Shown here: piece after piece, positions 811 to 64,000 of the stretch
Layout: every line of letters begins with the position of its first letter
Numbering within the stretch: position 1 is the stretch's first letter
Source of the DNA: Octopus bimaculoides
Taxonomy: Eukaryota
Length of the DNA stretch: 64,000 nucleotides
Assembly (NCBI RefSeq): GCF_001194135.2
Contig: NC_068993.1
Coordinates: 10,340,665-10,404,664, forward strand
Direction of reading: 5' to 3'
The notes under the pieces: generated by a model
The model's database searches: none
Seen by the model: the letters and a program-made list of their open reading frames with translations, nothing else
Told to the model about the DNA's origin: nothing
Made by a program: the position numbers and the translations under genes

Positions 811-994
811 ACACACATACATACATACGCCATCACGTATGTGCTCACACACTTCCACGCATGTATATAAATACATCGTTGATCTTGCTATTTGTTTTCT
901 TTTTCTATTTGTTGTGCTTCCCACTTATCGAACATGTTCAAGTAATCATGCTAAAGCCAACACCGGATTTCTTCTGTTTCTTTCTTTCACATAG

Positions 995-1148
995 ACAGCA
1001 GACGTGTAATAAAGAGTAAAGCCACCCTGATCATCACACCTGCTTCCCTGGTACACCAGTGGGGAAAAGAAGTTGAGGCCAGGTGCAAAAGCGGTTCGTT
1101 AGATGTCCTTATATACCATGGACCAAAACGAGAGAAGAATGTCAGTGT
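995..1148 (+). CDS. TTF2: TTF2 exon ([20 protein letters not shown]...LIYHGPKR; motif Ia)
   Basis: tttcacatag acceptor, GTAAGT donor at 1149; phase 1 to 2 (alternative start 999 gives phase 2 to 2). Confidence 0.9.
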
Positions 1149-10100: not shown

Positions 10101-13100
10101 ATCTTGTGGCATTTTTTCGTCCAAGCCAAACTTTTAAAAGGTTTTTTTCATGATGCTGTTGAACTATGCATCAATAAAAAATGTGTGTGAAACAACTGTA
10201 GTGAACCTACAACCCATTTGTGTTCTTGTTTTATATATATCTATATATAGTTATTTTTTTAACTATAGCTTTTGATTTGTATGGATTCTTAACCCCTTTT
10301 CAACTAGATGAGAGGCGTTACTGAAAAGTTCTTGGCTTTGAGTAAAAGAAAATATTCCCCTCTCAGAATCACACACTTATTGCAGCAGTCCTTCTGTATT
10401 TCTAAGCCCTGTAAAAGAACTTGGACAGTTGGGCCTCCAACCAGGGATTTCATGATATCCTTAAAACCAGGAACTTTACAGTGCCTCCTTGTATGTGTGT
10501 GTATGCGTGCTCACACACACACACACACACACTGTGATTGCCTCAGTAAACAACTCTTCCTGAAAGCAACCATACTGCTTTCACAAATCTCAATATAAAA
10601 TGAATAAATAGGCGCAGGAGTGGCTGTGTGGTAAGTAGCTTGCTTAGCAACCACATGGCTTCGGGTTCAGTCCCACTGCGTGGTACCTTGGGCAAGTGTC
10701 TTCTACTATAAGCCTCAGGCCGACCAAAGCCTTGTGAGTGGATTTGGTAGATGGAAACTGAAAGAAGCCTGTCGTATATATGTATATGTATGTATGTGTG
10801 TTTGTGTGTCTGTGTTTGTCCCCCCCCCCACCATCGCTTGACAACCGATGCTGGTGTGTTTACGTCCCTGTAACTTAGCAGTTCGGCAAAAAGAGACGAT
10901 AGAATAAGTACTAGGCTTACAAAGAATAAGTCATGGGGTCGATTTTCTCGACTAAAGGCGGTGCTCCAGCATGGCCGCTGTCAAATGATTGAAACAAGTA
11001 AAAGAGAAATAAGATAATTTTTGTGCAGTATACTCAGCCAGTTGTTCTATTTTTCCTTTCTTTCCCTTGTAGTGTTGTTGTATCACAGTGGACAAAATTG
11101 TTGATGATTGTAAAATACCACATCACGCAGGCTCATTTTACGTATCATCTCATTGATGGGGCCATTCCTCCAAAGAAACGGTCAGAGATTGTTGATGACT
11201 TCAACACAAATCCAAACGGTGCAAAGGTAAGTAACTTTATATCATCATCAAGCATCTGATTTCCATGCTGGCATCGGTCAGACGGTTTGACTGGAACTGG
11301 TAAGCTAGAGAGAAGGACATCGTTGTTATAATGTTCACTTCTCCATGCTTGCAACGGTCAGATGGAATTTGCTGTGCCAGATTTTTAACAGCTGGATACC
11401 TTTCCTGTCATCAACCTTTACCTCGTTTCCAAGCATGGTAATATTTCCCTATATCTGTCTTTTACTTGTTTCACTCATTTGACTGTGGCCATGCTAGATC
11501 CCTACCTATCTAGACATATTCTTCATAGAAGACTGGAAAACTAACAACACTGCTTGTATAACAGTGACACTCATTTACGACCATCACATGGTATCAAAGC
11601 AAGGGTACAACTTTGCCTGGACTTGTATTTTCGAGGGAAACTTTCTAGGTTCAATCCCGTTATTCACGACAGATAGGAGTCTTTACACAAATATATATTA
11701 AACTAAAGTCTTATATTCCAGATATTACTTCTGTCATTGAAAGCTGGTGGTGTTGGTCTGAATTTGATCGGCGGCAGACATTTGTTTTTACTTGACAATC
11801 ACTGGTAAATATTTTTATTCTTTCTGTTTCTTTTCTTCTTCTGATGTTGAAACTAGAATGTTCAATCAGCCAAATTACTTGCTTATTGAATTAATAAGTG
11901 GCTGAGTATTTTTCAGGTACACGTACCTTTTAATGCAATTTTCAGATAGAATTTACCTGTTAAAATGCACGACAAGGGTATACCTTTGAATTGCAGATAT
12001 AATCCACTCAATAGGCTTCTATGCAGTTTCTATCTTCCCAGTTTCACTCTGAGAGTTTTGTTCAACCTTGGTCAAAAGAAAATGACATTTAACCAAGATA
12101 CTATACAGTGTGATTGAACCTGGGACATTGTGGTTTTAAAGCAAACTTCTTAACCATTCAGCCATATTGCATACCTGCATTATACAGGCATGCATACATG
12201 TCATCATCATCACCATTTAACTTCTGTTCTCTGTGCTGGCATTGGGCTAAACAGTTCGACAGGAGATGCCAGTGAGTTGTACCAGACTCTAGTTGTCTGC
12301 TTTGGCATGGTTTCTACTGCTGGATGCCCTTCCCCGTGCCAACCACTTTACAGAGTGGACTGTGTGCTTTATAGAAGACACGTCAAGCCATAGTCATGGC
12401 CAGTGACATGTAAAAGACACCCGTGTTGGTGACATGTAAGAGGCACCTGTACTGGTGACATGTTAAAAGCACCCCTCCTGGTAACACGTAAGAGGCACCT
12501 GTGTGAGTGACATGTTGGAGACACCTGTGCCAGCGACACATAAAAAGGCATCCAGCCTTAGAAACCAAGCCTGGTACAGCACTCCAGTTTACCAGTTCCA
12601 GTCGAACCATCTAACCCATGCCAGCATAGAAAATGGACAGTAAATGATGATGATGATCGACTCATGTTGTAGATGAAAGATGGGAGTTCTACAATTCCTT
12701 GTTGAACAACCTGCATACACAATATGTTTATTGTGATTGAATATTAGTGCTGAAATTATAGCTTACACCCTCCATCAAATTAACATTACCTGTACGGGTG
12801 CACTAAGATGTTTTGTTCATGAACACAATATACTGCCAGGTCTGGTAATTGAAACTATGGTCTTGCAGCTGTGAGTGCAACACCCTAACCACTCGGCCAC
12901 TCACCATCACTCCATTTATACATTATGCATCTTTTCATCATCATCATCATCGTCGTTTAACGTCCGCTTTCCATGCTAGCATGGGTTGGACGATTTGACT
13001 GAGGACTGGTGAAACCGGATGGCAACACCAGGCTCCAATCCAATTTGGCAGAGTTTCTACAGCTGGATGCCCTTCCTAACGCCAACCACTCAGAGAGTGT

Positions 13101-17162: not shown

Positions 17163-17262
17163 NNNNNNNNNNNNNNNNNNNNNNNNNNNNNNNNNNNNNN
17201 NNNNNNNNNNNNNNNNNNNNNNNNNNNNNNNNNNNNNNNNNNNNNNNNNNNNNNNNNNNNNN
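17163..17262. other. Assembly gap
   Basis: Run of N. Confidence 1.
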
Positions 17263-17339: not shown

Positions 17340-18950
17340 ACTTGTACTAATTGTGATCGTAGTCATAGTTCTGGTTGGTTGAGGTTTTATGTTTTAAAAA
17401 TTTTTTTGTGGTTTAAAAAATATATAATATATATATAACAGAGAGAGAGAGAATTCTACAAGGCAACAATGTTGTGATAGCAAAAGTTTGCTTAAGGCAT
17501 ACCACAACACTGGGATAAAAAAAAAGCTACAGAACTCTTTTTCTGCATTTAAAAGTATGGGAATGCTGCCTGGATTTGACTGCTTTTGAAATAGAACCAG
17601 AAATGTTTTTTTTTTTATTGAAAGAAAAAAGGGAGGGGTGGGGATTAATTAACGCCTTGTATAAAAACCAAGCATTAATTCCGAAATTTCTTTGAAGAAA
17701 AACAAACAATAAGATGAAATAGAAATACATCTTTTGAGTTAAACAGAAGAGAGGGAGAAAAGAGAAATTAGATTTGAACAAGCAACTGAAATAAGTATTT
17801 CGGCTGTAAAACAGAGATGGGCGGATATGCAACTGGATAAAGCAAAAAAGAAAATAAATAAAAGGCAAGAAATAATAGAAATGCGTAAAAAAAATAAAAC
17901 AAAGATCTACATTGTCATTACATTATTTTTCACAGCTTAGTATAAAGGTTTGAGAAGAAAAAAAAGGTAAGTTGAAATAAANNNNNNNNNNNNNNNNNNN
18001 NNNNNNNNNNNNNNNNNNNNNNNNNNNNNNNNNNNNNNNNNNNNNNNNNNNNNNNNNNNNNNNNNNNNNNNNNNNNNNNNNNNNNNNNNNNNNNNNNNNN
18101 NNNNNNNNNNNNNNNNNNNNNNNNNNNNNNNNNNNNNNNNNNNNNNNNNNNNNNNNNNNNNNNNNNNNNNNNNNNNNNNNNNNNNNNNNNNNNNNNNNNN
18201 NNNNNNNNNNNNNNNNNNNNNNNNNNNNNNNNNNNNNNNNNNNNNNNNNNNNNNNNNNNNNNNNNNNNNNNNNNNNNNNNNNNNNNNNNNCCATCTTTTT
18301 TTCAGAGGGGAGAGAAAAAACTAAGAAAATATACATCTTAAAAAATAGGAAGTTAAAAAGGTATTTTTTCTCCTTAAGAAAACAAAAAAACAAACAAAAC
18401 TGTAAATTCCAAAGAGAACTCTTGAATGAAAATTTAAATACAAAAATTTAAAAGAATTTTTTTTGTGTAGTCTTTTGTGCTTTCTTTTAAAAGAAAAAAA
18501 AATATATAATATATATATAAAAAAGATTTTAAAAAAGTCCAGGCATTTTACTGCAAAATATAAGTTAGGACATTGTCCATCAAGCGTCTTTTGGATTTTA
18601 TAAAAAAAAAAAAAAAATGCTTGGGCAGAGAGAAACTATGCAAATGGGGAGTGTGTGTGTATGTTTGTGTGTAAGGAGATCCATGTGCCACACTAATGCT
18701 CACACCTAAATGGAGACTTATTTATATTTCACTTCTGATTATTATCATCATCATCATAATTTCTTTTTACATTATAATCAGAATATGTTTCCTCCATCAA
18801 CTCATCTTCCAAATCAAACAGATGGAGTGATAATTTACAAATAATATATATATAAGCCACATCAGATACCATGATGAATTTAAGGTAACAGAGGTGGTCA
18901 GACTCTACATAAAGAGTACACAACCACCATATATATATTATATTGATTTC

Positions 18951-20344: not shown

Positions 20345-21005
20345 ACATCAACCTCCAGCTCTCAACTGGAACACGTATTTCATTGACTCCAAAAGGATGA
20401 AAGGCAGAGTTGTGCTCGGCAGAATTTTAACAAAGAATGTAAAGCTGGATAAAATGTTGCCAAGTATAATAATAATCCTTTCTACTAAAGGCGAAAGGCC
20501 TGAAATTTGGCAGGAGGGGACTAATCAATTACATAGACCCCCAGTGTTTCACTGGTACTTAATTTATTGACTCCAAAAGGATGAAAGGCAAAGTTGACCT
20601 CGGCAGAATTTGAACTCAGAACGTAGAGATGGATAAAACGCTGCTAAGCATTTTGTCCAGTGTGCTGACGGTTCTGCCAGCTCACCACCTTAATAATAAT
20701 AATCCTTTCTACTGTTGGCACAAGGCCTGAAATATTGAGGAGGGGGTGAGTCAATCACATTGACCCCAAAAGGATGAAAAGTAAAGTTAACCTCAGCGGA
20801 ATTTGAACTCAGAATGTAGCTACAGGCAAAATGCAGCTAATCATTTCGCCTGGCGTGCTAACGATTCTGCCAGCTCACCGACTTAATAATAATAATAATA
20901 ATCCTTTCTACTAAAGGCGCCATGCCTGAAATTTGTTGGGAGAGGACTAGTTGATTACATTGACAGTGTTTCACTGGTATTTAATTTATTGACCCTGAAA
21001 GGGTT
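20345..21005 (-). mobile_element. Cluster of tandem SINE family C copies separated by (TAA)n
   Basis: Four repeats of aatcctttctact...aaggcctgaaat / ggatgaaaggcaaagt. Confidence 0.85.
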
Positions 21006-21329: not shown

Positions 21330-21735
21330 TACTCTTTTACTTGTTTCAGTCATTTGACTGCGGCCATGCTGGAGCACCGCATTTAGTCGAGCAAATCGAC
21401 CCCAGGACTTATTCTTTGTAAGCCTAGTACTTATTCTGTTGGTCTCTTTTGCCGAACCACTAAGTTACGGGGATGTAAACATACCACCATCGGTTGTCAA
21501 GCGATGTTGTCAAGGGACAAACACAGACACACAAACATATACACACACATACATATATATATAGATATATACGACAGGCTTCTTTCAGTTTCCGTCTACC
21601 AAATCCACTCACAAGGCTTTGGTCAGCCTGAGGCTATAGTAGAAGACACTTGTCCAAGATGCCACGCAGTGGGAATGAACCCGGAACCATGTGGTTGGTA
21701 AGCAAGCTACTTACCACACAGCCACTCCTGCACCT
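21330..21735 (-). mobile_element. SINE family B, full length
   Basis: Near-perfect reverse complement of 10611-11006. Confidence 0.9.
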
Positions 21736-33556: not shown

Positions 33557-35470
33557 GACATTTGCAACAGTCACATAATGCACCTAGACAATAGGGGTAA
33601 TGGGACGGAAAAAAATGCAAATTGAAGTGTTGATCCAGAGAAAGAAAATGTGTACAGTATTAAAAAAAAATGGTAAAGAAACGGGCAGAAAAGCATCCAT
33701 GAAAGGAGAGAAAACATGAAATCAGGACAAAGTTACTTTTAAAAATTGGAAGGATTGAAAAGTTTAGGAAAATGCAAGAAAAATATTTTAAAAGGTAAAA
33801 AAAAAAAAAAAAAAAAAAATTACATGATCACCGCAAACATCACCACCACCATTAAAAAGGTAAAAAAAATACCACCACCACCACCACCACCACAGAGCTC
33901 TAAAATCATCACCATTACCACCACCACCATCAACATTGCTACTACTACTACTGCTACCATTACCATTACCATCACCAGCAGCCAATACCAGCTGTACTTA
34001 CTGGGCTCAGACGACCACCCTGATATGGATGGGTATCAAGCTGGTCCTCAGGATTGCTTCTGGTGTACTTAGGCGGAACGGGTGGAGGAGGCCTTTTGCG
34101 AAGTCCAGTTTGTGGATCCCGGATGCCATTCACTAGGCCGAACTTGCTGCCGAAACCAGCTCTAGTTGTCTGCGTTAAGACAAACATGGACATTTCTGGA
34201 TAGGTTGATAATTTTATTTTTAAGTGCATCGTGTGCCAAAAGTGTTAATAAAAGTTAGTGCCATGTGCAAATCGCTACCGCGAACAAGATGAGGTAAAAA
34301 AAAAAAAAAAGGAGGGAGGGAGAAAAAAAAAAGGCCTTAGCCATTTTTAACTCCCTGCATGCAACCATTTGCACAGATTTTGGCACAATACGCCACAGCC
34401 AACATTCAATGGTATTAACACCCCACCCCATTTGCAGTTACATGGTTCCATGCTTCAAGTTAAATGGCTTTTGCTTTAAACGCAAAAAAAAAAATATTAA
34501 TAAAACCCAGTTAGTCAAATATTTCTTAGTAGCGGAGGGGGATGTGGGGAAACAAATAAAGCAACTAAAATATTGTGGTGTGTAAACTATACACACACAC
34601 ACAATATGTATAAGTGCAGATATCATTATCAAGTGAAACAAGATAAGTTATAAACAAACTTGGAGTGACATTTTAATAAATGATTAAAAAATAAAACAAG
34701 GCAAGAATAGTCTTAGAAGGAAATTGGCAAAACCCATTCTAATATAATTCTAAGACCATGTAAAAAGCACCAAGTTACCAGGTTATGATTTCCATTTACT
34801 TCAACGAGTCACCCTCTGGTATCTAAACTACACTAACATAATACATCTCCTTGACCAAGACTCCCACCACAAATCTAGGGACTAAGTCATAACAAAATTC
34901 AGTTTTGAAGCTGTTGAATCCTAAACAGAATGATAAATTACCTTAATGTAAAATGACGTCACTGCACCCAGAACTAAACAAGGCACAGTTGTGTTAGGAC
35001 AACTCCATTTTACTTTTCTGATGGAAGTATTAAAAAGAATCTTTTGATGAAAATGTGACTATCAACTATGGAGAGGGAAGTAAGGATGGTTTCTGGAGAA
35101 TGAAGTGGATGAGAGGCAAATATTTTTCTGGATAATGGATTGGTTGGTGTATTTTCGGTTAACACAGCCAGAAAACCCTTGCGTTTCCCTTCTGCTCCGG
35201 TCAGTACAATTAAATGTTCTGCTTAATCATAACTAAAATAGTCATAATAAAACAAATTCACAACCAGTGGAATGATGGTGCAACATTTTATCCACTTAGT
35301 CACTTCACAATTTTTGCAGTAAAATCATGTTTAATATAATATGATATTGTTTGGAGGATAAATTACTGACAGGCATCGTGGCACCTTGGGCAAGTGTCTT
35401 CTACTATAGCTTCGGGTCGACCAAAGCCTTGTGAGTGGATTTGGTAGATGGAAACTGAAAGAATCCCGTC

Positions 35471-35514
<44 letters not shown>

Positions 35515-37151
35515 TTGTCCCCACAACATCGCTTGACAACCGATGGTGGCGTGTTTACGTCCCCGTAACTTAGCAGTTCGGCAAAAGAGACCAATAGAAT
35601 AAGTATCAGGCTTACAAAGAATAAGTCCTGGGGTCGTTTTGCCTAACTAAAGGCAATGCTCCAGCATGGTCGCAGTCAAATGACTGAAACAAGTAAATGA
35701 GTATATTCACTGTGGGATGCATCAAAAACTTAACAGGATAGAATTATGCAGTGAAGAATAAACAACATTGGTCTTTTCTACAGCACATCCAGTCCCTTTT
35801 CTCAGTCTATTAAACAATAACTAATAAAGGTTATCTAAGATCAGCCATTTTTGTTAAAAATGGAGAGAGGAATGTCGACTGATTAAATCCTACATGTGAA
35901 GTATCTCCTCAAACTTACCAGCATCATACCGTTGATTGGTAAAATATAGTAAATCAGACTTGCTTCCTAACACCTAATCAGTTGGTTTTGATTAGCATTT
36001 TAATAGGAATGCTGCCAAATAACAATCTGGACAAGGCAAGCTGATGAAAATTTACTCCATCATCTCAATTTTCCATGTGTTTATTTTCTCATCTTGAGAC
36101 ACATTTCATATAAATAATCTAACAGAGGTTCCGTTAATTTTCTAATGTGTATATAAAAATGTCTGGAAATTCTAAGTTTACTATCCACCAACCAAAGGCT
36201 ACACACAGTAACCTGGCTCAAACTAAAATTCATTTTCCAGTTTAGCTGGTCAACTGCCTTGTGGTGAACAAGAGTGCTGATACTTTATGAAGAACTGTAA
36301 AACAGTTTTATGATACCAAAGCAAGCCAAAGAATACAAGAAATTTATACAGGCATCTAAGTATCATACTTAATGTACATACGCTATTTATAGGCCAGTTA
36401 TTGTGGTATTCTCAAAAAGGCAACATTCCCTATGGGTCATGCTGTGTTAAAAACACTATAATAATCTAGTATATGCAATTCAAGCAACATTAAATTAAAA
36501 TAGCTATCTAGGTATCATATCATAATGTAGATACACTGTTGACAGGCCAATTACAGCATGGTATCTCAAGATGAATACTGCAGCAACTGGCCTATCAATA
36601 GTGTATATCAATTAAGTATGGTACATAGATGACTATTTTAATTTAATACTGCCTCAATAACATATACTGGATATATATATTTATGTGTCTAGAATTTGGG
36701 AACTGAAGATAGTCAGTGATGATTATAACAGTTGGGGAATGGTGTAAATTAGGAGGGGTGGGCACAATAAAAGTTAATAGTTTGTTCAATGTTTACTACT
36801 TACGTTTTTGTATTAGTAAAGTGATTTAAAAAAAAAAAAAGAAAGTGGGTGTGTGTTGAGGGGGAAGCCATGGTTAAGTTCTTAGTGCTTTGGTTTCAAT
36901 TTCCAGACAGAAATGTTCTGTTTCCTTTGCAATAAATAAGGGACCTTGAGAAAAGGTGTATATTCCATAAGTTCCAATAATCTCACTGGTAAACTGGGCT
37001 CTTAACAACTTATGTAAGAGAAATCACCATTGTTATTACACCAAGGGTGTTTTTAGAAAGGAATAGCAGCAATGCTACAACTTATATATCTCATTTACCC
37101 TTTTAAGGAAAAGGGGAAGATTTTTCTTGTTTTCCCCACCTTGTCGATAAC

Positions 37152-46100: not shown

Positions 46101-49100
46101 AGTGATCTGTTTTCACAATTTGATGCAATTCAAGTGCCATAGAGTCAATAGACATCTATGTGGTACAGCTAAAACATGAATACGTTNNNNNNNNNNNNNN
46201 NNNNNNNNNNNNNNNNNNNNNNNNNNNNNNNNNNNNNNNNNNNNNNNNNNNNNNNNNNNNNNNNNNNNNNNNNNNNNNNNNNNNNNNNNNNNNNNNNNNN
46301 NNNNNNNNNNNATATATATATATATAAAGATTCTATTTGTAAATTTTTTTTTTTGAGACAAACATTTTCAGATCAGTTGTATTTGTGTGTAGATGAAGAT
46401 TATATATAAAGACACAATGTAATGTTTTCTAATATTTTATCATTTCCAAACATGAGGGTGTGTCAGTGACTAAGATGTGATGACAGATGGAGCATGCACG
46501 AAACAAAAGATAATGCTAACATGAAGCTACGATGACATTTCATACATTTTATATATGTGCAGTTGCTATAAAAATCATTTTACACAGAAAGACAACAAGT
46601 AAAGCACAAGAAAATACAATAAATAAATGATTAACAAAATAAAACAAAAAAAAAAAGGATGTTGGTTAAAACAGAAGTGACAACAAAAGCTCAAGGGATG
46701 ACCATGCCTTATATATGGAGGTTTGAAGGATAATGGGATTGAAAGTGTATATGCATTCGGATTGATGAATGACAAGAGAGAGAGAGAGAGAGAAAGTAGA
46801 GAAGAGATGGAAGTATAGTAAAGAGATGGAAGTAGAGTGAAGTTGGTAAAATAACTTCCACATTGGAAAGGAATGCCAACAGGCATTTATAAACATTAAC
46901 TAAACAACAATATAAGTGATATAGTGACGTTAATGACATTGACAGTAACAAGAACAATGGGTTAAGACGCAAAAGGAACAAGAGGAGGACAGGAATACTT
47001 GGATACAGGAGCGGGAGGAGGGATGTTCTACAACAGACACCTGACAACACCGAGGAAAGGTAGAAACACAACACAAAAAAAGAAACAAAGGGTTGATACA
47101 TATGAGGTGTGGAGAGAAACAGGTGAGAAAAGTGAAGATGTATAGGACAGGGTATTAGCGGTGAGGGGGGGGGGGAAATGACTCCACAAACAAGCAGGGT
47201 GACATTTCACAGTAAGCAAGAGGACGACAGGGGTGGGGGAATGGAGGAAAAAAAAAGGTATTATTATTGGATACATGTCTTAGAACATCACTTAGCAGAG
47301 TACTTTCTAGAAATTGGAAAACAGAGATTAGGAGAGTAGGAAACTAACTATACATGCCGAGATTCTATTTCTGAAGATGGTTATGAAACGTAGTAAGCAG
47401 ATGAAGATTATAGGTGGGACTCTAGCTAGAAATAAGTACATCCATGCACAGAGCTGTCAACATTTTTTTAATTATTCAATTTAAAGACTGATCTATATTG
47501 TAGAATAGGTAAATTCAAACAGAATTTGCCCACCTATTTAAACTGATCATATCCAGCCCAAATATTCTTCCTGTTTTTAGTGTTCAAACCAGCCAGATCT
47601 GACCTCTCATACCTATCCTGCAGTATCATTCTATAAGTATACAATCGCATCATTGAAATTTCAAAGCTGTGAGATAATGCCTGATTGATTCAAAACAATG
47701 TGAATGAATAAGCATTACATGTGACAGAATAATTTGAATGCTAAAGGGCTAAATGTAGCTTAGAATAGATACTTTGTGTGTGCATACATGTGTTTGTATT
47801 ATTAGTTTCAGCTGTTGAACTGAGTCTATGTTAGGGCACTGCCTTCAAGGAATAATCAATTATAACAAATGCCAGTGCTTAGTAAGTATTTATTTTAGTC
47901 ATCAACCATGGAAAGATGAAACAAAGTGTGCTATCATAGGATTATTACCTCCGCCTTAGTGAAGGCAGAGATATTCTTTTCAGTCATGTTTGTTTGTCCG
48001 TGGACAAGATATCTCAAGAACGACTGGATGGATTTGGATGAAACTTTCAGGGATGTTTGGCCTTATGACTGACACAAACTGATTAGATTTTGGGATCGAT
48101 CCGGTACCAGACAAGGATTCTGGATTATTTTTCTTGTTTTTTTTTACATAATTTTTGAGAGCGGTCAGGTTCGTATTTAGTATTTTCGTTTGTGAGAGCA
48201 GTCGAGTTTATTTCAGATATTATCATTTTAAAAATCATCTCTGGCTAATCATTGAGAGGATGTTGGTGTTGCCTTGGTGGAGGTTTGCGCTTTCTGAGTG
48301 CTCTTATTATTATTATTATTATTATTTTCATCATTAAATAGGTACAGTCATATCTTCTGAAGTAGATTTGTTTAAAACAAAACTTCAAAAAAAAAAAAAA
48401 AAAAGGTAGAAAAGAAGCTAGCTTATTGATAGAGATTTAATTAGTACCATGGCAGGTCAAGTGACTATATAACTTCTTTCATTAGCTTATGAAGGTTTAT
48501 GTATATTTTTACCAAGGTCACAACCTATGATCCCAGTCATGACCATCCTGCCCTCTGCTTTTCTACCAGTGTATCCATGACGCTATCCCATGTACTGTTC
48601 CCTTTTTAAGATGACAGATTTAAAGGAGATTTGCCGATTTCTTGCAGGTCAGGAGACTGCATAGCAGCATGTGCATTAATGGCTGAATATATGAAGATAT
48701 GTAAATGTAGACCAAGTGTAGGTTAGAATTGCGTAAAATTGAGTATATAATGTGTGTATATCTAAGAAATTAGAACAGCACTAGTTGAACAGCTCTGATA
48801 TAGAAAAAATACATGAGAGTGATAGAGAGAGAGAAAAAGAACCGGGCCATGTTCTTATTAGTAGACAAAGGAGTAGATTGCAGATAAGTATTACAGGTTG
48901 GTGTCGGCAAACACCACCGACAGACAGAAGATGGCAAACCTTCTCTACCAATTCTTGTTCTTCGTCTAGAATAGGGGGCAACTTTGTCTTCATTTGCTCT
49001 GCCTGAGCATCAAATGTTGTCACCTTATCCTTGCCCTCACCTTCATCATCAGAGGAATCGGACGAAGAGGAGGAGGAGGAGCTGGATGAATGCTGTAAAG

Positions 49101-55100: not shown

Positions 55101-58100
55101 GATGGTTTAGTTATGATGGTTTAGTTATGATGGTTAAAATAAAACCTTCCATGCTGGCATGGTTTGCCAGGAGTTGACCAGGCAGAAGACTGCACCAGAC
55201 TTCTGTGTCTGTTTTGGCAAGGTTTTTATGGCTGGATGCCCTTCCTAACACAAAAAAGTGTTATTTTTTATGCAGGCCTCTAAAATGTATCAGCTATTGT
55301 TGATAATTTTTGAATAACTTTTTTTTAGAGCTATGAAATATATTTATTTTCAAATTTTCTATAGGATTTTGTTTTTATATTCTCTTTCTATTAAAAAAAG
55401 TCAAATTAAATTATTTTTAAAACCATAATTTTATCTCAAGAATAACATTAACTGGTTTAAAAGAGAAAAATAAAACTGCTTTTTATGAACAAAATTAAAA
55501 CTGTTACCTATCTTGAATATTATACAAAATACTGTAAATATGGAACAGCACTTAATATATTAATATATATTTGAACTGCTTTTAATCTCGTTCATAAAAT
55601 TGCCTAAGAAGTGCTTGGAATAATAATAATAATAATAATAATAATGATGATGATCCTTTCTACTAAAGGCACAAGGCCTGAAATTTGGCGGTGGGTGGAG
55701 GGAACTGGTTGATTACATCCACCCCAGTGTTTCACTGGTACTTAATTTATTGACCTCGAAAGGATGAAAGGCAAAGTCAACCTTGGTGGAATTTGAACTC
55801 ACAACATAGCAACAGGCGAAATAACACCAAGCATTTTATCCGGCACGCTAACGATTCTGCTAGTTTGCCACCTTATTAATCATAATAATAATAAAAAATT
55901 TTAAACTGACCGTGCAGGCAATCATTTAAAACCTTAAAACCTCAGAATGCACTTGTTAGACAACAAAGTGATAATTGCGAACCTGGAAGGGCAAAGATGC
56001 CTTGAAATATACCATGATGAGGTGAAGAAAATATTAGCCAAAAAAGCATCATTCAAAGAACAGAACAAATCAGAAGATTGCAGTTTGAAAGATAAACATG
56101 ATAAATGGATTAAAGCAAAAACAGTGATTAGATTTCTGCATCATCTACAACTGCTGAAAATGCAGCAGGGCATGCTGAACAAACAGAAATGTCTGTTGTC
56201 ACCTTTTCGGATCTCTTTTTAAAAGGATTTCGCATAGGACACAGAAGTCCAGACGATGACCTATGGACGCTCTTCTGTAAGACCATGGAGATATTATATA
56301 TACACAGATATATATATATGTAAATGTTTTATATATATATATATATACACAAATACACGCCTTATAAAAATAGTCTAAGGATGTAATAATTAATAAATGG
56401 AATACCTAATTTGAAACATAAGTTCCATTAAAAATCTGAATAAAAATTGATGGAGACAGCTTGACAAATAATTACTGATGCGTAGTTTACAAGTTAAAAG
56501 TTGTAAAGAATTCATTCAAAAATGGATTTTATGAATCTTAAAATATAATTGAAAGATATGTATGTAAATTTTACAGTTAAATACCACACTTAATTTTTGA
56601 AACTTATGACTATATTAAAAATGAAGTTACAAAGAAAAATCGATAGTAAAAAAAAACAAAAAAAACAAAACAAAGATATTTGGTATATTTTGTAAAAACG
56701 AAATTGTAGTTAAAATATAGATGGAAGAGTAAGTAGTAAACACACAAGCTTGGAAGTTAGCAAAAACTATCTAAAAGAAACTTTTCAAGTCATATTCTTA
56801 TTAACAGTTCCTAGACGAACTTCAAAAGCAAAAATATTACAATTATAAAGTCACACTAGCAAAGTTAATTACGAGTTTTGGAAACAAATTTTCTGTTGCT
56901 TGATCAATTCTTAAACCATAATCAGAACACAAATTACATTAACTCAATTCGTAACAACAAAATCTATCCATCAATTATTTTCGAACCAATTTTATTCTAG
57001 CTGTAACTTAACCCTTTACTATGTAAGCCAATCATATCTTGCCCAAATATTCAACTGGTTTTACACTCAAACTAACCAGATCTGGCCTCTCCACCTACAT
57101 ATAACTAAAACAATTGCAGCGTGGAAGCCGTTTAAAAACACACAAAAAAGATTCACTTCAACATTTAAATTTAATTTATCAAAATATTTTTGTCGCTCTG
57201 AAACTGCAACCTGATCACTGACAAAATTCCGTGCTCTAATTTTGGCCAGTAGGGGCAGTTGGTACCAGCAACTTCAGGTTGATGAAATAAAATACTTTGC
57301 TTGTACTTATTTTATTGAACCCAAAAAGATGAAAAGAAAACTGATCTTGATGGGATTTGAACTCACAATGTAAAGGGCTGGAACAAATACTGCAAAATAT
57401 TTTCCTGATATTTTCACAATTCTGCCAATCTACTGCTTTTAGCTGAATTATAAAATTCATAGTAATAAAAGGAAACTACATTTTCTTCTGAATGAAGTGC
57501 TTCCATTTCTTTTTCGAGATACTTAAAGAAAAGAATTGTGTTAATAGCTTCCAAATTGAACTTAGGGCTTCAGCTAATAACCAACTTTCTAAATCAGTAT
57601 TTAACATGTGATCTAAACTGATATTTCTGTTGCATAAGAAGTTATTCAGGTCTTTCTTAGCCTAAAGATTTAAGAGTTAAAAAAAAAATCAATGCAAAAA
57701 ATATACTACAATAATGATTCTTATCTCAAAGACATTAGTGATCACTTGGTTAGGTGAAATATTTATAATGAAGAATTGGAATCAGATATCAGATTAAACC
57801 GAAGATCTTGGTGCCACTACAATTGCCTATGATGTGAAATGTTAATGCAAGCTCAAGTGACATTCAGTAAAATCAGTTGCAATAAATTCCAGCATTTATT
57901 ATGGATATATTATTGATAATAGATAAACAGCTAAATTAATCCCTAAAGATTTTTTTTTTAATGCAGAACCATGAGTCAGCAAAGTTAAACATAAACTATT
58001 GAGGATCAGCTTTCTAACTTTGAATCAACAAGACTACATAATCATTATCCCAACGTATGTCTTCCTTCCCATCTTGAAACTTCTCTAAATGAAAACGATC

Positions 58101-61100
58101 AAGTATTAAAAAGCCAAAAAGATTAACTAAAACAGACAGATTAATAACAGAGACACACAGAAAAATAAATCTACAGCATACTGAATAATTCAATTCTGCC
58201 AATCTACTGCCTTTAGCTGAATTATAACCCTAACCCTAACCCTTTTAAAACTAAAGTACAAAATCAACTTTGCTGGAATTCTCTTTTGCCCAGTTTTCTA
58301 GTTTAATTTAACTTTCTACTTTCATTGTAGAGTTGTTACAATGAAGTTGTTGATTAAAGGTTAAATCAATCTGAAGACCAAACTCTCGGTGCAACATGGT
58401 CACTAAAAGATTTTCTTTTTTCCTCCATGGACGGTGAAATACAATTTAGATTGCAATGTTTAACTACTTAGACTATGGAAATATCTACAAAACATTCCAC
58501 TAACACAAGAAATTACTGGTACGTATTTCAGTATTAAACTATTTAACATATTAATGAACACATTTAAATGATGTAGAATCATCTTTAGCAACTTATAATC
58601 ACGTGCAATAATATCATCCAAAATGTAAGACCAACACCAATGAATTATGACTACTGGGGACTATCATCAATTTAAGAAACACAACAGGGCACCAGGGTTT
58701 TTTTCTAATGTCTACTCTACAAAAAATAATTACAAGCTGAGTTTTAATATCAATGTATTCTTAAATAACAAAGTTGAAGTCTTACTTTTGCAATCATTAA
58801 ACTAAAAGATATACACTAAAACTATTCAAACACCATGCATATCATCATCAACATCCTAATCATTATAATAATAACTATGGTTAGTAATAATGAGAAAAAG
58901 AAATAAAGTACTGAAACAAATGTACAAAAATTTATAAGTGTTAGAGACAGTATACTCTAAACAGAATCAGAGTCAGAAACAAAACTAATTATTTAAGAGT
59001 TAATATCAACTAAAACCACATCTGTTGACACTTCCTAAAACGAACTACAAACACAGAATAGTTTCCTTCTAGAATAATGCTTTAAAAATTACTCAACTCG
59101 AGTAGCTATGCACTGTTGAACAGCAGTAGAGATAAATTTCGGTTGTGGTTATGACAACAGAGTTCTTTTCAATAGCCATAAGAATGAGTTATAAACCATC
59201 GATAGAGAAATTTCTTAAATGAACACAAACTGCTAAGTTAAACAGAAGACAATAACTCAAGCCATGAAGCGGCCTCAAAACAAGAGCAGTTAACAGAGAG
59301 AGACTGAAGGTTAAAGTGTTTTAATTTAGAAAATCTCTTCGACAGAACAGAATTAACTGGCACAAGCGTTGAAGAGTAATTAATTGTTCTCAGCTGAGAA
59401 TCAAAGAGTCCAGCCATTAATCTGAAGAAATTTCTTTTTAAGAGAAAATATTTTGCCAAGAAATACATATTAGTTAAGTCAGCCTAAGAAACATATCCAA
59501 TAATAATTTTCTCTATTTTTGTAATTTTAATTAATGTACTAAAATAAGGATGAGCATGCTGTAGAGCTAATTGAATAAAATCACCCCAAATCAAAAAAAA
59601 AAAACAAAAAAGACCTTTTTGGACTCTTTCGTGTCTGAGACATCTACCTCCACAGATTCCACTTCCTGTTGTAATTATACAGGGGAGTTAGAAAATTTTG
59701 TATTAAAAAATTAACATAAAAAAACCCCCAACTGTTTATGTCAATTTATCAGGTTTTAAATGAAAAATGAAAACCCTCAGTCTGTTTAGTCCATATTCGT
59801 CATCATTTTCGTCTTTTAATAAAAATTTATTTTCAAAATTACCAAAGTTTTCTTTTTCTCCGGTTTCATTTAATATCTTATCAAAAGTTAAGATGATGGG
59901 AGTTGTTTGAGAATTACAGGTATGAATTCTGTCATTTGTTTAGAAATTACGTAAAATTATATGAGAATGACTTGTATTGGAAGATTTACTTGCTGTATTG
60001 CTAGTGAGTATTTCATTGATCTTTTACTAAGAGTAATAAGAAAATTGACTTCGTTAGATTTGCTGTTTATCACTCTGGAAACTTGAGCAGAAACCCAATG
60101 ATAGAGAAATGATTAAAATGAGCACTGAAGAAGACAACTTGTGCCATGAATCTGCCTGAAAACAAAGGCAGATAACTGAGAAAGACTGAAGGTTAAAACT
60201 TTCCAGATTAGAAAATCTCTCCAACAGAACAGAATTTAACTGATACAGGCCTTGATAAGTAATTAATTTATCAATGGTTATCAGTTCAGAATTAAAACAG
60301 GTGTCAATTTAAAGGAGTTTTGAGTTTTTTTTCTTAAAGTGAATATCTTTTGCCAACAAAAAATGCTTTAGATATAGTTAAGTCAGCCTAAGAAACATAG
60401 CCAATAATTCATCTACTACAGTAAAGATCAGCATGCCAGAGAACAAATCGAATAAAAATCACTCAACAACAAAATCAGAAAAAAACCTTTTTGGATTCTT
60501 TCTTCTCAGTTTCTGTAACTTCTACCTCCACTTTTTTCACTTCAACTTCCTGTCACAATTATACAGGGGAGTTAGAAAACTTTGTTAAATAACAACTAGA
60601 AAATTTTAAAATAATATCATCACAAAACTCCAGCTGTTTATGTCAATTTATCTCGTTTTAAGTGAAAAATAAAAAGCCTCAAATCTTTTTAATCCATTCC
60701 CTTTGTAGTTTTTTACATTTTAATGAAACTTCATTAAAATAAATAAATTAAAAAATAAGCTTTTTTTTTTTGTTTTTGTTTCATTTAATGTCTCATTAAA
60801 ATTCAGATTATGGCAGTTGTCTGCAAACTATATAAGTATAGGCTTTGTCAGTTGCTTACTATATTACTAGCAGACATTCGATTGACTTTTAACTAAAAGA
60901 GTGAAAAGAAAATCGACTCTTTTTATCACTCTGGAAACTTGAGCGGAAACTCAATGATAGGGAAATGATTAAAATGAGCATTGAAGACGACAAGTTGTGC
61001 CATGAATCTGCCTGAAAACAAAGGCAGATAACTGAGAAAGACTGAAAGTTAAAACTTCCCAGATTAGAAAATCTCTCCAACAGAACAGAATTCAACTGAT

Positions 61101-62321
61101 ACAGGTCTTGAAGAGTAATTAATTTATCAATGGTTATCAGTTCAGAATTAAAACAGGTGTCTATTTAAAGGAGTTTTTTTTTTAAAAGAGATCTTTTGCC
61201 AACAAAAAAGGCTTGAGACATACATATTACTTAAGTCAGCCTAAGAAACAGAGCCAATAATTTTTTTTTTCAGTATTTTTGTAATTTTAATTTATCCACT
61301 ACAATAAAGATCAGCATGCCACAGAACAAATCAATTAAAATCACCCAACAAAACAAAACAGAAAAAGACCTTTTCGGGTTCTTTCTTCTCAGTTTCTGTA
61401 ACTTCTACCTCCACTTTTTTCACTTCAACTTCCTGTTGCAATTATACAGGGGAGTTAGAACATTTTATCAAATAATAACTAGAAAATTTAAAAAATAATA
61501 TCATCACAAAACTCCAGCTGTTTATGACAATTTATCTCGCTTTAAGTGAAAAAAAAAAACAACCTCAAATCCTTTTAATCCATTCCCTTTGTTGTTCTTA
61601 CATTTTAATAAAACTTCATTAAGATTTATTTAAAAAAAAAGAAGCTTTTTTTTGTTTCATTTAATGTCTCATTAAACTTCAGATTATGGGAGTTGTCTGC
61701 AAACTATAAGCATAGGTTTTATCAGTTGCTTACTATATTACTAGCAGACATTCGATTGACTTTTAACTAAAAGAGTGAAAAGAAAATTGACTTAGATTTG
61801 CTTTTTATCACTCTGGAAACTGGAGTAGAAACTCAACGATAGGGAAATGATTAAAATGAGCATTGAATACGACAACTTGTGCCATGAATCTGCCTGAATA
61901 CAAAGGCAGATAACTGAGAAAGACTGAAGATTAAAACTTCCCAGATTAGAAAATCTCTCCAGCAAAACAGAATTTAACTGGTACAGGTCTTGACAATTAA
62001 TTTATTAATCAATTAATTAATGGTTCTCACCTGAGAATTAAAACAGGTGTCAATCTGAAGAAATTTCTTTTCAAGGGAAAATATTTTGTCAATAGAAAAG
62101 ACCTTAGATATACATATTAGTTAAGTCAGCCTAAGAAACAGAGCCAATAATTTTTTCTTCAGTATTTTTGTAATTTTAATTCATCTACTACGATAAAGAT
62201 CAGCATGCCACAGAGCAAATCGATTAAAATCACCCAACAAAACAAAACAGAAAAAGACCTTTTCGGGTTCTTTCTTCTCAGTTTCCATAACTTCTACCTC
62301 CACTTTTTTCACTTCAACTTC
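21947..62321 (-). CDS. cora: Protein 4.1 / coracle (EPB41-like) gene, 3' part; FERM domain expected beyond right edge
   Basis: Three phase-0 exons spell the band 4.1 C-terminal domain (VPIVKTETRKVSY...QTIETTT / YRTEKDGMIETRVEKKVTITSD.DDIDYDA / ALAEAIRSVTQMNPDLSVEKI). Upstream same-strand phase-0 exons are assigned to this gene by position and phase only. Confidence 0.8.
22884..22973 (-). CDS. cora: 4.1/coracle CTD exon (YRTEKDGMIETRVEKKVTITSDNDDIDYDA)
   Basis: acttcag acceptor, gtgagt donor, 90 nt; ETR[VI]EK..ITSD.DID motif. Confidence 0.92.
28950..29315 (+). mobile_element. Internally deleted Tc1/mariner-superfamily transposon
   Basis: TA target duplication; terminal inverted repeats CAGGGTGATTCAAAA...TTTTGAATCACCCTG with extended imperfect inverted homology; internal broken frame RSPDLT/PLDFYL*GHLKGMVY...HLKERI...W.KRI..CIQNNGNHIE is a DDE/D transposase C-terminus. 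Confidence 0.9.
29830..30200. mobile_element. Adjacent TTAA-type MITE copies (ccctttagcatt...aaaggg family)
   Basis: aaccctttagcattcagatt...aaagggtcaa; related copies near 16520-16700, 31880-32095 and 47510-47755. Confidence 0.6.
31031..31240 (-). CDS. cora: 4.1/coracle exon (PPTIATESIKY...VPIVKTETRKVSYQ...SKTQTIETTT)
   Basis: tctttcgtctcctacag acceptor, gtaagt donor, 210 nt, phase 0-0; N-terminal part of the 4.1 CTD. Confidence 0.9.
33860..33975. repeat. Compound (CAC)n/(TAC)n/(CAT)n microsatellite
   Basis: Directly visible. Confidence 0.9.
34002..34169 (-). CDS. cora: 4.1/coracle exon with proline-rich motif (TTRAGFGSK...RKRPPPPVPPKYT...GGRLSP)
   Basis: tttgtcttaacgcag acceptor, gtaagt donor, 168 nt, phase 0-0, GC-rich coding-like composition; alternative acceptor possible at 34195. 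Confidence 0.75.
35370..35700 (+). mobile_element. SINE family B, 5'-truncated
   Basis: Matches 10680-11000. Confidence 0.88.
38376..38444 (-). CDS. Candidate cassette exon (VMNSDLLQMFQLSKRNALFSDHL)
   Basis: ctcggtcttag acceptor, gtaatg donor, 69 nt, open only in phase 0. Confidence 0.25.
38575..38920 (-). mobile_element. SINE family A-like, diverged
   Basis: tttaacatctgctttccatgctggcatggg...cccttcctaataccaatcact. Confidence 0.75.
39060..39830 (-). mobile_element. Cluster of diverged SINE family C copies
   Basis: Repeated aaggcc...ggatgaaa(g/a)g...aaagttga units with (TAA)n spacers. Confidence 0.8.
39863..40083. mobile_element. TTAA-flanked MITE (piggyBac-type ends)
   Basis: TTAA|CCCTTT at 39859-39868 and AAAGGG|TTAA at 40078-40087. 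Confidence 0.7.
40358..43297 (-). CDS. Giant 2940-nt exon encoding ~980 aa of GPDG heptad repeats, probably a cassette exon of 4.1/coracle
   Basis: Uninterrupted ORF; gtgtcttcttttctag acceptor (in-frame TAG, no ATG start), AAG/gtaggt donor at 40357; phase 0-0; about 120 x-[YF]-[GS]-P-[DN]-G-[KR] units. Confidence 0.85.
43433..43447 (-). CDS. Candidate 15-nt micro-exon (NQYKK in phase 0)
   Basis: cttttcttatattgattag acceptor, AAG/gtaatc donor, 135 nt upstream of the giant exon acceptor. Confidence 0.45.
44066..44153 (-). CDS. Candidate exon (LGFIEVTSASNYGFRTAAANCHYFTQQST), phase 2 to 0
   Basis: atttccag acceptor, gtgagc donor, open in only one frame; an internal GAG/gtaacc donor is also in frame. 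Confidence 0.3.
46187..46310. other. Assembly gap
   Basis: Run of N. Confidence 1.
46999..47027 (-). CDS. Candidate 29-nt exon (NIPPPAPVS-K), or 42-nt version starting at 47040
   Basis: Very long pyrimidine tract upstream, ttgtag (or gtcag) acceptor, gtattc donor. Confidence 0.25.
47944..48305 (+). mobile_element. Non-autonomous Helentron-associated (HINE/DINE-1-like) element
   Basis: 5' acctccgcc with short hairpin (ctccgcc...ggcagag), 3' sub-terminal inverted ggtggaggt followed by the hairpin gcgctttctgagtgc, in T-rich flanks. Family assignment is from recalled architecture. Confidence 0.6.
48940..49092 (-). CDS. 4.1/coracle variable-region exon ([22 protein letters not shown]...LDEEQELVEK)
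   Basis: catcatctttacag acceptor, AAG/gtttgc donor, 153 nt, phase 0-0, Ser/acidic coding-like content. Confidence 0.7.
49943..49984 (-). CDS. Candidate 42-nt exon (LLQPINHPTLNTPE)
   Basis: gtatttcag acceptor, gtgggt donor, open only in phase 0. Confidence 0.4.
50170..50700 (-). mobile_element. Cluster of SINE family C copies
   Basis: Same family motifs, three partial copies. Confidence 0.8.
50860..51230 (-). mobile_element. RTE-clade LINE 3' fragment
   Basis: Frame VRAMCGVKL...LGLEESVERLAR..WYGHVLRKEEEHVLRKVL...RPKKTW is an RTE RT C-terminus. Confidence 0.85.
51692..51820 (-). CDS. Candidate phase 1-1 exon (DFLSTYRRSLSPTTIPTASPSLLPS...)
   Basis: ggtttcag acceptor, gtgaat donor, 129 nt, Ser/Pro-rich open frame. 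Confidence 0.3.
53589..53684 (-). CDS. Candidate 96-nt exon (LLHSNLFMDDRWISTSPFVDSSLEEDQGCANP)
   Basis: ccttctctgttatagtttag acceptor, weak gtgata donor, phase 0-0. Confidence 0.3.
55074..55135. repeat. 14-bp minisatellite (ATGGTTTAGTTATG)x4
   Basis: Four perfect tandem units. Confidence 0.95.
55640..55875 (-). mobile_element. SINE family C
   Basis: Full family motif set, with gaatttgaactc on the + strand. Confidence 0.85.
56203..56274 (-). CDS. Candidate 72-nt exon (KSVHRSSSGLLCPMRNPFKKRSEK)
   Basis: ggtcttacag acceptor, AAG/gtgaca donor, phase 0-0, GC-richer than its flanks. Confidence 0.55.
58225..58242 (-). repeat. Short interstitial (TTAGGG)3
   Basis: taaccctaaccctaaccc on the + strand. 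Confidence 0.7.
59615..59665 (-). CDS. Tandem-array mini-exon, unit 1 (EVESVEVDVSDTKESKK)
   Basis: ctaactcccctgtataattacaacag acceptor, AAG/gtcttt donor, 51 nt, phase 0-0. Confidence 0.65.
60487..60549 (-). CDS. Tandem-array mini-exon, unit 2 (EVEVKKVEVEVTETEKKESKK)
   Basis: ctaactcccctgtataattgtgacag acceptor, AAG/gttttt donor, 63 nt, phase 0-0. Confidence 0.65.
61370..61432 (-). CDS. Tandem-array mini-exon, unit 3 (EVEVKKVEVEVTETEKKEPEK)
   Basis: ctaactcccctgtataattgcaacag acceptor, AAG/gtcttt donor, 63 nt, phase 0-0. Confidence 0.7.
62259..62321 (-). CDS. Tandem-array mini-exon, unit 4 (EVEVKKVEVEVMETEKKEPEK)
   Basis: ctaactcccctgtataattgcaacag acceptor, AAG/gtcttt donor, 63 nt, phase 0-0. 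Confidence 0.7.
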
Positions 62322-62965
62322 CTGTTGCAATTATACAGGGGAGTTAGAAAATTTTATGTTAAAAAAAAAAACAAGAAAACCCCCCCAAAAAACACAGATT
62401 CAATACATCCCTTTCATCATTATCATCATTTTTATCTCTCTTCCTTAATACTTTTTCATAGACAGAATAGAAACCAGAAGTCTTCAATACATCAATGCTT
62501 CTACATCAGCTTCAATGCTTGTAGAACTAGAGAGCATTCCTACATGTTCTACTGACTGCAGATCCCAATGTGTGGAGGTTTTATTGTTTCAGAAGAGGTA
62601 GGCAAGTACATAAATGCATACATACACATATATACAGTCACATATACACTTACATACACACACACACGAAATACATGTATACCCTCATATGCATGCATGC
62701 GTCCATACGTACATATTTAAAGCGTTAAAATCCGGATTAATGATAGAGGACATAACTGTATCTGGAGAATGACAGAAACCTGCTAAACAAGCAGTTTTAT
62801 GTAAGAGGGTATGACCAGGCGTTTAAGTGAATATTTGTTTCTCTTCAATACAAGCCTTTAATTAAAGACATCTGATGCTGTCTTGTCAATAAACTGTATC
62901 CTGATCACAATGAAAACACAACACAAGACCATAGTTAATAATAAATGAATACAACTTTTGATTTT

Positions 62966-63001
<36 letters not shown>

Positions 63002-63221: not shown

Positions 63222-63539
63222 NNNNNNNNNNNNNNNNNNNNNNNNNNNNNNNNNNNNNNNNNNNNNNNNNNNNNNNNNNNNNNNNNNNNNNNNNNNNNNN
63301 NNNNNNNNNNNNNNNNNNNNNNNNNNNNNNNNNNNNNNNNNNNNNNNNNNNNNNNNNNNNNNNNNNNNNNNNNNNNNNNNNNNNNNNNNNNNNNNNNNNN
63401 NNNNNNNNNNNNNNNNNNNNNNNNNNNNNNNNNNNNNNNNNNNNNNNNNNNNNNNNNNNNNNNNNNNNNNNNNNNNNNNNNNNNNNNNNNNNNNNNNNNN
63501 NNNNNNNNNNNNNNNNNNNNNNNNNNNNNNNNNNNNNNN
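63222..63539. other. Assembly gap
   Basis: Run of N. Confidence 1.
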
Positions 63540-63890: not shown

Positions 63891-64000
63891 AAGACACCCA
63901 AAGTGCTGCAGACTGGGCCTATAAAAATTATTGGAAAGAAAATTGTGGAAAACGGGGCTAAAATAAATGCTCTTTGACATCACTACATCTATGAACCTGT

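Follow-up and report, generated by a model that had tools for sequence, protein, structure and literature searches.

Closest described systems

Tandem exon duplication is said, after work by Kondrashov and Koonin from 2001 and by Letunic et al. from 2002, to give rise to alternative exons, which are often spliced in mutual exclusion. Unannotated duplicated exons can be detected by such repeats and then need support from RNA sequencing (Ivanov & Pervouchine 2022, PMC9013439). The present analysis concerns a stretch of 64,000 nt from Octopus bimaculoides (assembly GCF_001194135.2, contig NC_068993.1, positions 10,340,665 to 10,404,664 of the forward strand; hereafter the window, to which all positions refer), in which a long intron of the gene for protein 4.1 contains a tandem array of ~885-bp units. 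Each unit carries a short exon-like segment on the minus strand (segments A to D), whose predicted peptide is rich in E, V and K. As in tandem exon duplication clusters, the copies of an intron-exon-like unit follow one another head to tail in a single gene, with symmetric phase and on the coding strand; unlike in those clusters, the array copies are candidate exons, and no constitutive exon of the gene is homologous to any of them. The array also differs from exclusive clusters of the Dscam type, because it lacks docking/selector complementarity and because the ~820-nt intervals between the copies leave no steric exclusion. Mutually exclusive splicing by RNA pairing was rejected as a candidate: the comparison of the units with their flanks returned only A/T-rich inverted repeats of the kind expected by chance.

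In the PEVK region of titin, small E/V/K-rich exons are duplicated in tandem, and an unstructured spacer is longer or shorter depending on which of them are included (Muenzen et al. 2019, PMC6469411). A preliminary description of the window, made from the sequence alone, had drawn an analogy to this region. The analogy holds for composition – 19 of the 21 residues per segment are E, V, K or P in units A-C – but not further: the array has one proline per unit, no PPAK-type motif and four copies instead of about a hundred; its host is a membrane-skeleton adaptor and not an elastic filament; and the titin exons are documented by transcripts, whereas the segments are candidates.

Vertebrate 4.1R/EPB41 possesses cassette exons around the region that binds spectrin and actin, and Drosophila coracle a large alternative exon. 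The array belongs to the same family and to the same region (between FERM/FA and CTD), which is rich in cassette exons and includes a very large exon; but each known 4.1 cassette exon has a sequence of its own and support from transcripts, while the array consists of near-identical tandem units with candidate exons. Long introns are reported, in a study by Sun and Chasin from 2000, to contain pseudo-exons, which possess formal splice sites but are never spliced. The locus resembles these in its many segments composed of an acceptor AG, an open reading frame (ORF) and a donor GT (AG-ORF-GT), in the preservation of another such segment in all unit copies, and in a very weak donor. It differs from typical pseudo-exons in an unusually purine-rich patch, a near-optimal branch-point motif and a somewhat lower number of changes among the young copies. 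We give about even weight to the explanation that the segments are pseudo-exons or proto-exons, unused or used at trace level.

The tandem array and its exon-like segments

The tandem duplication of an ~885-bp intron piece is real. The repeat search (families D1-D12) gives start-to-start spacings of 889, 883 and 884 bp, and the units are arranged head to tail on the minus strand, in the orientation of the 4.1 gene. The array and its units are delimited as follows:

59245-62385, minus strand: tandem array of ~3.5 units, period 883-889 bp (repeat search, MAFFT alignment A1, blastn of unit B)
~62385-61480, minus strand: unit A (MAFFT alignment A1)
61479-60590, minus strand: unit B (MAFFT alignment A1)
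60589-59700, minus strand: unit C (MAFFT alignment A1)
59699-59245, minus strand: unit D, truncated (MAFFT alignment A1)

With unit B as blastn query, identity amounts to 87.9% for A, 74.6% for C and 72.1% for D, and the match to D ends at 59245; no further unit copy was found in the 64-kb window beyond the array. The preliminary description was thus right about the tandem repeat, but its four units of ~880 bp reduce to about three and a half. Its further proposal, a recently expanding array, is doubtful. In the alignment, units A, B and C differ from one another by 10.5-13.4% and D from the others by 22-24%, while the difference between the window and a processed copy from O. sinensis (see below) is ~3% over 279 nt. 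By this crude divergence yardstick, the duplications predate the split of these octopus species.

Direct reading of the minus strand between 58800 and 62800 reproduced, to the base, the coordinates and translations under which the four segments had first been described. In the lines below, a slash marks the exon-intron boundary.

62321-62259, minus strand: exon-like segment A, 63 nt, phase 0-0, EVEVKKVEVEVMETEKKEPEK, acceptor AG 62323-62322, donor GT 62258-62257 (AAG/GTCTTT) (direct reading)
61432-61370, minus strand: exon-like segment B, 63 nt, phase 0-0, EVEVKKVEVEVTETEKKEPEK, donor AAG/GTCTTT (direct reading, alignment)
60549-60487, minus strand: exon-like segment C, 63 nt, phase 0-0, EVEVKKVEVEVTETEKKESKK, donor AAG/GTTTTT (direct reading, alignment)
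59665-59615, minus strand: exon-like segment D, 51 nt, phase 0-0, EVESVEVDVSDTKESKK, donor AAG/GTCTTT (direct reading, alignment)
62322-62349 (A), 61433-61460 (B), 60550-60577 (C) and 59666-59693 (D), minus strand: TTCTAAC, weak pyrimidine tract and CAG acceptor (motif positions)
62227-62258 (unit A), minus strand: donor GT, then a U-rich tract (GTCTTTTTCTGTTTTGTTTTGTTGGGTGATTT); shared by all four units (alignment A1, columns 143-180)

The motif TTCTAAC precedes each segment (62349-62343 in A, 61460-61454 in B, 60577-60571 in C, 59693-59687 in D), so that a branch-point-like A lies 23 nt 5' of each segment, with a CAG acceptor and no AG in between; every site conforms to GT-AG. The segment patch is GARGTN-periodic, with a purine content of 79% (69% in D). 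That none of the segments had appeared in the list of ORFs is explained by the ORFs, which are only 36-49 amino acids long.

Weak donors

The weakness of donor positions +3 to +6, noted already in the preliminary description, stands out against all nine supported donors of the window. Homology or reading frame supports each of these, of which four come from the 4.1 gene and five from a convergent gene of the SNF2 helicase family; they read GTAAGT (four times), GTGAGT, GTGAGA, GTAGGT, GTAAAT and GTATTT. They have a purine at +3 in nine of nine cases, A at +4 in seven and G at +5 in seven. In the segment donors, GTCTTT in A, B and D and GTTTTT in C, position +3 is a pyrimidine and positions +4 and +5 are both T; these donors match the intron-side RAGT consensus at one of four positions, as against two to four in the supported donors. 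According to the rules of U1 pairing, they would base-pair over AG/GU only. Two alternative donors were considered and found unconvincing: GAG/GTAGAA inside the patch, which would define a micro-exon of 18-24 nt, and GTGATT, 25-30 nt downstream, for which the frame differs between units.

Host gene, intron and a processed mRNA copy

A protein 4.1 gene occupies the minus strand of the window with its 3' two-thirds, as the preliminary description had proposed. The spliced CTD exons match the Pfam family 4_1_CTD (PF05902) with E=1.1e-19 (71 bits, cut-off 25), and linker and CTD are homologous to 4.1 proteins of molluscs and cephalopods (tblastn). The following exons of the gene were located:

43297-40358, minus strand: giant exon, 2,940 nt, phase 0-0, YGPDGK-type repeats, acceptor TTTTCTAG/, donor AAG/GTAGGT (1041-codon open frame; processed-copy homology)
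34169-34002, minus strand: 168-nt exon, phase 0-0 (tblastn)
31240-31031, minus strand: CTD1 exon, phase 0-0 (tblastn, Pfam)
22973-22884, minus strand: CTD2 exon, phase 0-0 (tblastn, Pfam)
22048-21950, minus strand: CTD3 exon, phase 0-0, followed by the stop (tblastn, Pfam)

The 3' end of the giant exon is homologous to a spliced cephalopod transcript (P0005), and the donors of the exons located 3' of it are GTAAGT, GTAAGT and GTGAGT. The gene's 5' portion is located past position 64000, and no FERM-like frame was found within the window. The array is placed in the variable linker between the FERM part outside the window and the CTD. The intron that bears the array extends over more than 20.7 kb in the window and ends 3' at the giant exon (43297), the next exon downstream that has support from homology. 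The window does not include the exon upstream of this intron (ending in GAAATGACTCAG), which may be situated past position 64000 or inside the assembly gap at 63222-63539.

The phase of this intron, and information on its splicing, come from the genome of O. sinensis. Positions 43299-43021 of the window are 97% identical to contig VCDQ01003438.1 (locus L002), where positions 10001-10998 are an intronless fragment of a 4.1 messenger RNA (mRNA) between repeats resembling short interspersed nuclear elements (SINEs). The fragment encodes the 4.1 linker (...KKREKEQKKREEEERKRREKEEKERKKK...EEPEVAAEKEKGKEKGRLGLFGKFRKHPKDKDKGKTPPASPTEKEMTQ/PSVNGELYPS...), and its linker part is 44% identical over 90 amino acids (E=2e-12) to the spliced cephalopod transcript mentioned above. 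Because the fragment is intronless and carries two 1-nt deletions, it is classified as a fragment of a processed pseudogene; an interpretation as the orthologous locus was rejected, since the processed fragment is flanked by the SINE-like repeats. The NCBI annotation at this place, a 'glutamic acid-rich protein-like' model, removes 111 nt without GT-AG boundaries and enters a shifted frame, and is probably a pseudogene artefact.

Homology of the fragment to the window starts exactly at the giant-exon acceptor, 43297, and the junction ...ACT CAG/CCT AGT... places the intron in phase 0. Since the host intron and the segments are all of phase 0, any combination of segments is neutral to the frame; the reading frame would be kept on inclusion of 63, 63, 63 or 51 nt, as had been claimed. 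In the fragment, ...PTEKEMTQ is joined directly to PSVNGELY and all four segments are skipped. At least one mRNA isoform therefore skipped everything in the array intron. This fragment is the only mRNA-derived sequence found across the intron.

In a database of 5.8 billion sequences, the concatenated segments plus flanking exons recovered no protein with the segment peptide at E<=10, and a 392-residue concatenation of array ORFs from both strands likewise gave no match at E<=10. Nor did an exhaustive HMMER search, for which the O. sinensis linker protein was the query, bring up a protein with the peptide; all that it yielded were short pieces of genomic exons (P0018-P0020; the contig of P0019 measures 1.4 kb). 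Apart from the model of the processed copy (P0010), the searches met no Octopus protein that contains the giant exon or the CTD. The splice-tunable charged spacer that had been proposed for the array is a candidate explanation, and the sequence evidence as a whole speaks slightly against it.

Chance expectation and internal control

In Markov-2 simulations, the combination of CTAAC, YAG, an open phase 0-0 frame of 45-78 nt and GT is expected 4.65 +/- 2.3 times per 64-kb strand, and 0.37 +/- 0.64 times if the segment has to end in AG. The four segments are one event that was copied, not independent events; therefore, the single founding occurrence is not beyond chance. Without the branch-point requirement, 279-316 acceptors per strand qualify as AG-ORF-GT. 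As an internal control, we collected all segments of 39-90 nt consisting of AG, an open frame divisible by three and GT in one unit and checked their preservation in the other three. There are ~13 such formal segments per unit, and an unrelated one of 42 nt (RFSNLGSFNLQSFS) is likewise kept in all four units. Alignment of the segment with the constitutive linker exons of 4.1 gave scores no better than those of shuffled sequence; with no detectable homology to these exons, the segment has no known parent exon.

Conservation among the units

The preliminary description had named, as a result that would tell against it, exon portions whose conservation does not exceed that of the remaining unit. 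The answer depends on the units compared. Across all four, 60% of the segment columns are invariant as compared with 54.5% for the shared unit (MAFFT alignment A1), which does not set the segment apart. Among A-C, only 4 of the 63 segment columns are variable and none is gapped, while the remainder comprises 160 variable, 144 gapped and 563 invariant columns, and the depletion of substitutions in the segment is significant (Fisher P=0.001). In substitutions per site, D differs from A-C by 0.18-0.25 in the segment and by 0.22-0.24 outside it.

The 35-nt window at the acceptor (columns 46-80) is 83% invariant (29/35) and ranks among the three best of the unit; it is matched or exceeded at columns 441-475 and 256-290, with 495-529 slightly behind, and two of these three are intronic. 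Segment B differs from A by two substitutions in one codon, and C from B by two non-synonymous substitutions; none of the four substitutions among A-C is synonymous. The variable sites are distributed over the codon positions as 5/2/6 in the MAFFT alignment (P=0.24), a pattern equalled by 17% of control windows. An excess at third codon positions was discarded as evidence, because it depends on gap placement (4/2/8 in the manual alignment, 5/2/6 with MAFFT).

Every unit also possesses a second island of low divergence (alignment A1, columns 441-595), with several acceptor-like TTTTCAG/G motifs and no apparent function; among A-C it is conserved to the same degree as the segment. Within it, units A-C share an 8-bp hairpin (AUCUGCCU-N8-AGGCAGAU; e.g. 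61007-61030, minus strand). A sense-strand open frame of 69-91 codons (...LYQLNSVLLERFSNLGSFNLQSFSVICLCFQADSWH...) runs through each unit, at 59241-59483, 60057-60308, 60892-61164 and 61795-62001 (minus strand). These frames have no match in Pfam, and their amino-acid divergence in D equals the neutral expectation.

Favoured and alternative explanations

In the explanation that we favour, an ~885-bp intron piece was copied in tandem to 3.5 copies within a phase-0 intron of the 4.1 gene. Each unit carries a purine-rich (GAR/GTN-periodic) patch of 51-63 nt with a good branch point, a CAG acceptor, a frame-neutral ORF and AAG/GT. As the segment donor lacks the whole intron-side consensus, the spliceosome would normally skip the entire interval, as happened in the mRNA behind the O. 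sinensis copy, and the four 'intact' copies would reflect copying plus limited decay rather than selection for coding function. We infer that inclusion of the segments is absent or very low.

Several observations weigh against this explanation. U-rich tracts located 3' of a weak donor are the arrangement that lets proteins of the TIA-1 type rescue weak donors. The purine-rich patch, one of three independent sense-strand stretches with at least 79% purine in 42 kb of the 4.1 gene, resembles splicing enhancers of the GAR type. The silence of the database is weak evidence, because the giant exon and the Octopus CTD are missing from it too; Octopus 4.1 is essentially unrepresented. Besides the depletion of changes among A-C, acceptor plus segment form one of only two islands of low divergence in a sliding-window scan of these units (the other is at ~457-595). 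In D versus A, the 35 nt located 5' of the segment contain one mismatch, as compared with a background divergence of ~22%, and the donor core AAAGGTCTTTTT is unaltered. Finally, D differs from A-C in the segment by two indels, each of 6 nt, while among the 7-13 indels per pair outside the segment only 0-23% are multiples of three.

Alternatively, the segments could be genuine regulated cassette mini-exons, with weak donors activated tissue by tissue, for instance through GAR-rich enhancers and proteins binding to the U-rich tracts, which we regard as possible but the less probable case. Since the segments and the host intron are all of phase 0, anything from zero to four units could then be added, and the disordered linker of 4.1 would gain 17-80 acidic E/V/K residues. 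The segments indeed lie on the sense strand within the linker intron, their phase fits the mRNA junction, the TTCTAAC/CAG region and AAG/GT are conserved in all four units, substitutions and gaps are scarce in the segment among A-C, both segment indels measure 6 nt, and the peptide composition is like that of the neighboring E/K-rich linker, e.g. ...KKREKEQKKREEEERKRREKEEKERKKK... or ...EEPEVAAEKEK.... However, the donors are unlike any supported donor of the window, the extra conservation disappears once unit D is included, a control pseudo-exon is kept equally well, and the segments are missing from the processed mRNA copy and from database proteins. Furthermore, there is no synonymous excess, and the 6-nt indels could arise without selection by slippage in the GARGTN-periodic patch (lag-6 self-match 0.42-0.46). 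An extension of the cassette explanation is exon birth in the octopus lineage: a purine-rich intronic patch without parent exon would have gained splice signals and then been amplified in tandem to four additive, frame-neutral mini-exons, a course of events that we likewise regard as possible but less probable. By way of these exons, of 17-21 residues each and up to 80 in total, splicing would adjust how long and how negatively charged the linker is, and the weak donors followed by U-rich tracts would be the regulatory handle.

In another reading, the conserved islands, the acceptor-like stretch among them, could have a non-coding role or origin (an intronic element that regulates the splicing of neighboring exons, the remnant of a mobile element, or tracts made alike by gene conversion between units) and the open frame would be incidental. 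The equally conserved windows outside the segment at columns 256-290, 441-475 and 495-529, the hairpin kept in A-C and the 69-91-codon frames of no recognisable family are in agreement with this. Yet Rfam gave nothing above the gathering scores in 58500-63000, Pfam gave no match for the unit ORF, and 64 kb full of SINE-like repeats contain no other unit copy. Nor was long-range pairing with the flanks detected; the hairpin disappears in D with no compensating change, and the fold z-scores are ordinary. We consider a non-coding role improbable. Among its variants, a small nucleolar RNA, a microRNA or another known RNA was rejected on the Rfam result, and a mobile-element origin on the lack of a further copy in the window and of a Pfam match for the unit ORFs. 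Good 3' splice signals combined with poor donors could also mean that the acceptors are used without the donors, as alternative terminal exons with a short read-through tail, which would cut 4.1 off ahead of the giant exon and the CTD, and an ATTAAA is indeed found just past the read-through stop in unit A (62190 region). But the read-through tails differ per unit in sequence and in length (28, 13, 3 and 8 codons), no polyadenylation signal is conserved and no supporting sequence emerged from the database searches, so that we consider terminal exons very improbable.

Other features of the window

A further candidate cassette exon lies in the array intron at 49092-48940 (minus strand). It is of phase 0-0, with a CAG acceptor, a good pyrimidine tract and a weak donor, AAG/GTTTGC; no homolog was found in the database, and it is missing from the O. 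sinensis processed copy. The giant exon encodes 980 amino acids of degenerate YGPDGK/R-type heptads with a 21-nt period, organized in three higher-order copies of ~795 nt; its Pfam matches (Proteasome_A_N and others) resemble low-complexity artefacts, with no significant stretch among them. Exons of the SNF2-family helicase gene, which converges on the 4.1 gene, are located at ~985-8450 (plus strand; Pfam SNF2-rel_dom, E=6e-37).

Two families of SINE-like repeats are present in several copies (6083-6511, 9094-9315, 10781-11022, 21330-21670, 35377-35703, 1213-1597, 20518-20692 and 55708-55876) and are common to the window and the O. sinensis contig, with 70-87% identity. Assembly gaps (runs of N) are found at 17163-17262, 17982-18290, 46187-46311 and 63222-63539, the last of them 840 nt upstream of the array.

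Significance

Even if the segments are cassette exons, the phenomenon is of a known kind: tandem exon duplication (PMC9013439) combined with PEVK-like tuning of a spacer (PMC6469411). If they are unspliced, the array is an ordinary intronic tandem duplication and a useful warning that AG-ORF-GT segments, even those kept in several copies of a repeat, are common in long AT-rich introns. If they are spliced, the locus would be a clean, young case of coding modules born from intron sequence, in which tandem duplication made a combinatorial 'dial' for length and charge in a cytoskeletal adaptor – and the case would fall in the cephalopods, a group of unusual transcriptome plasticity.

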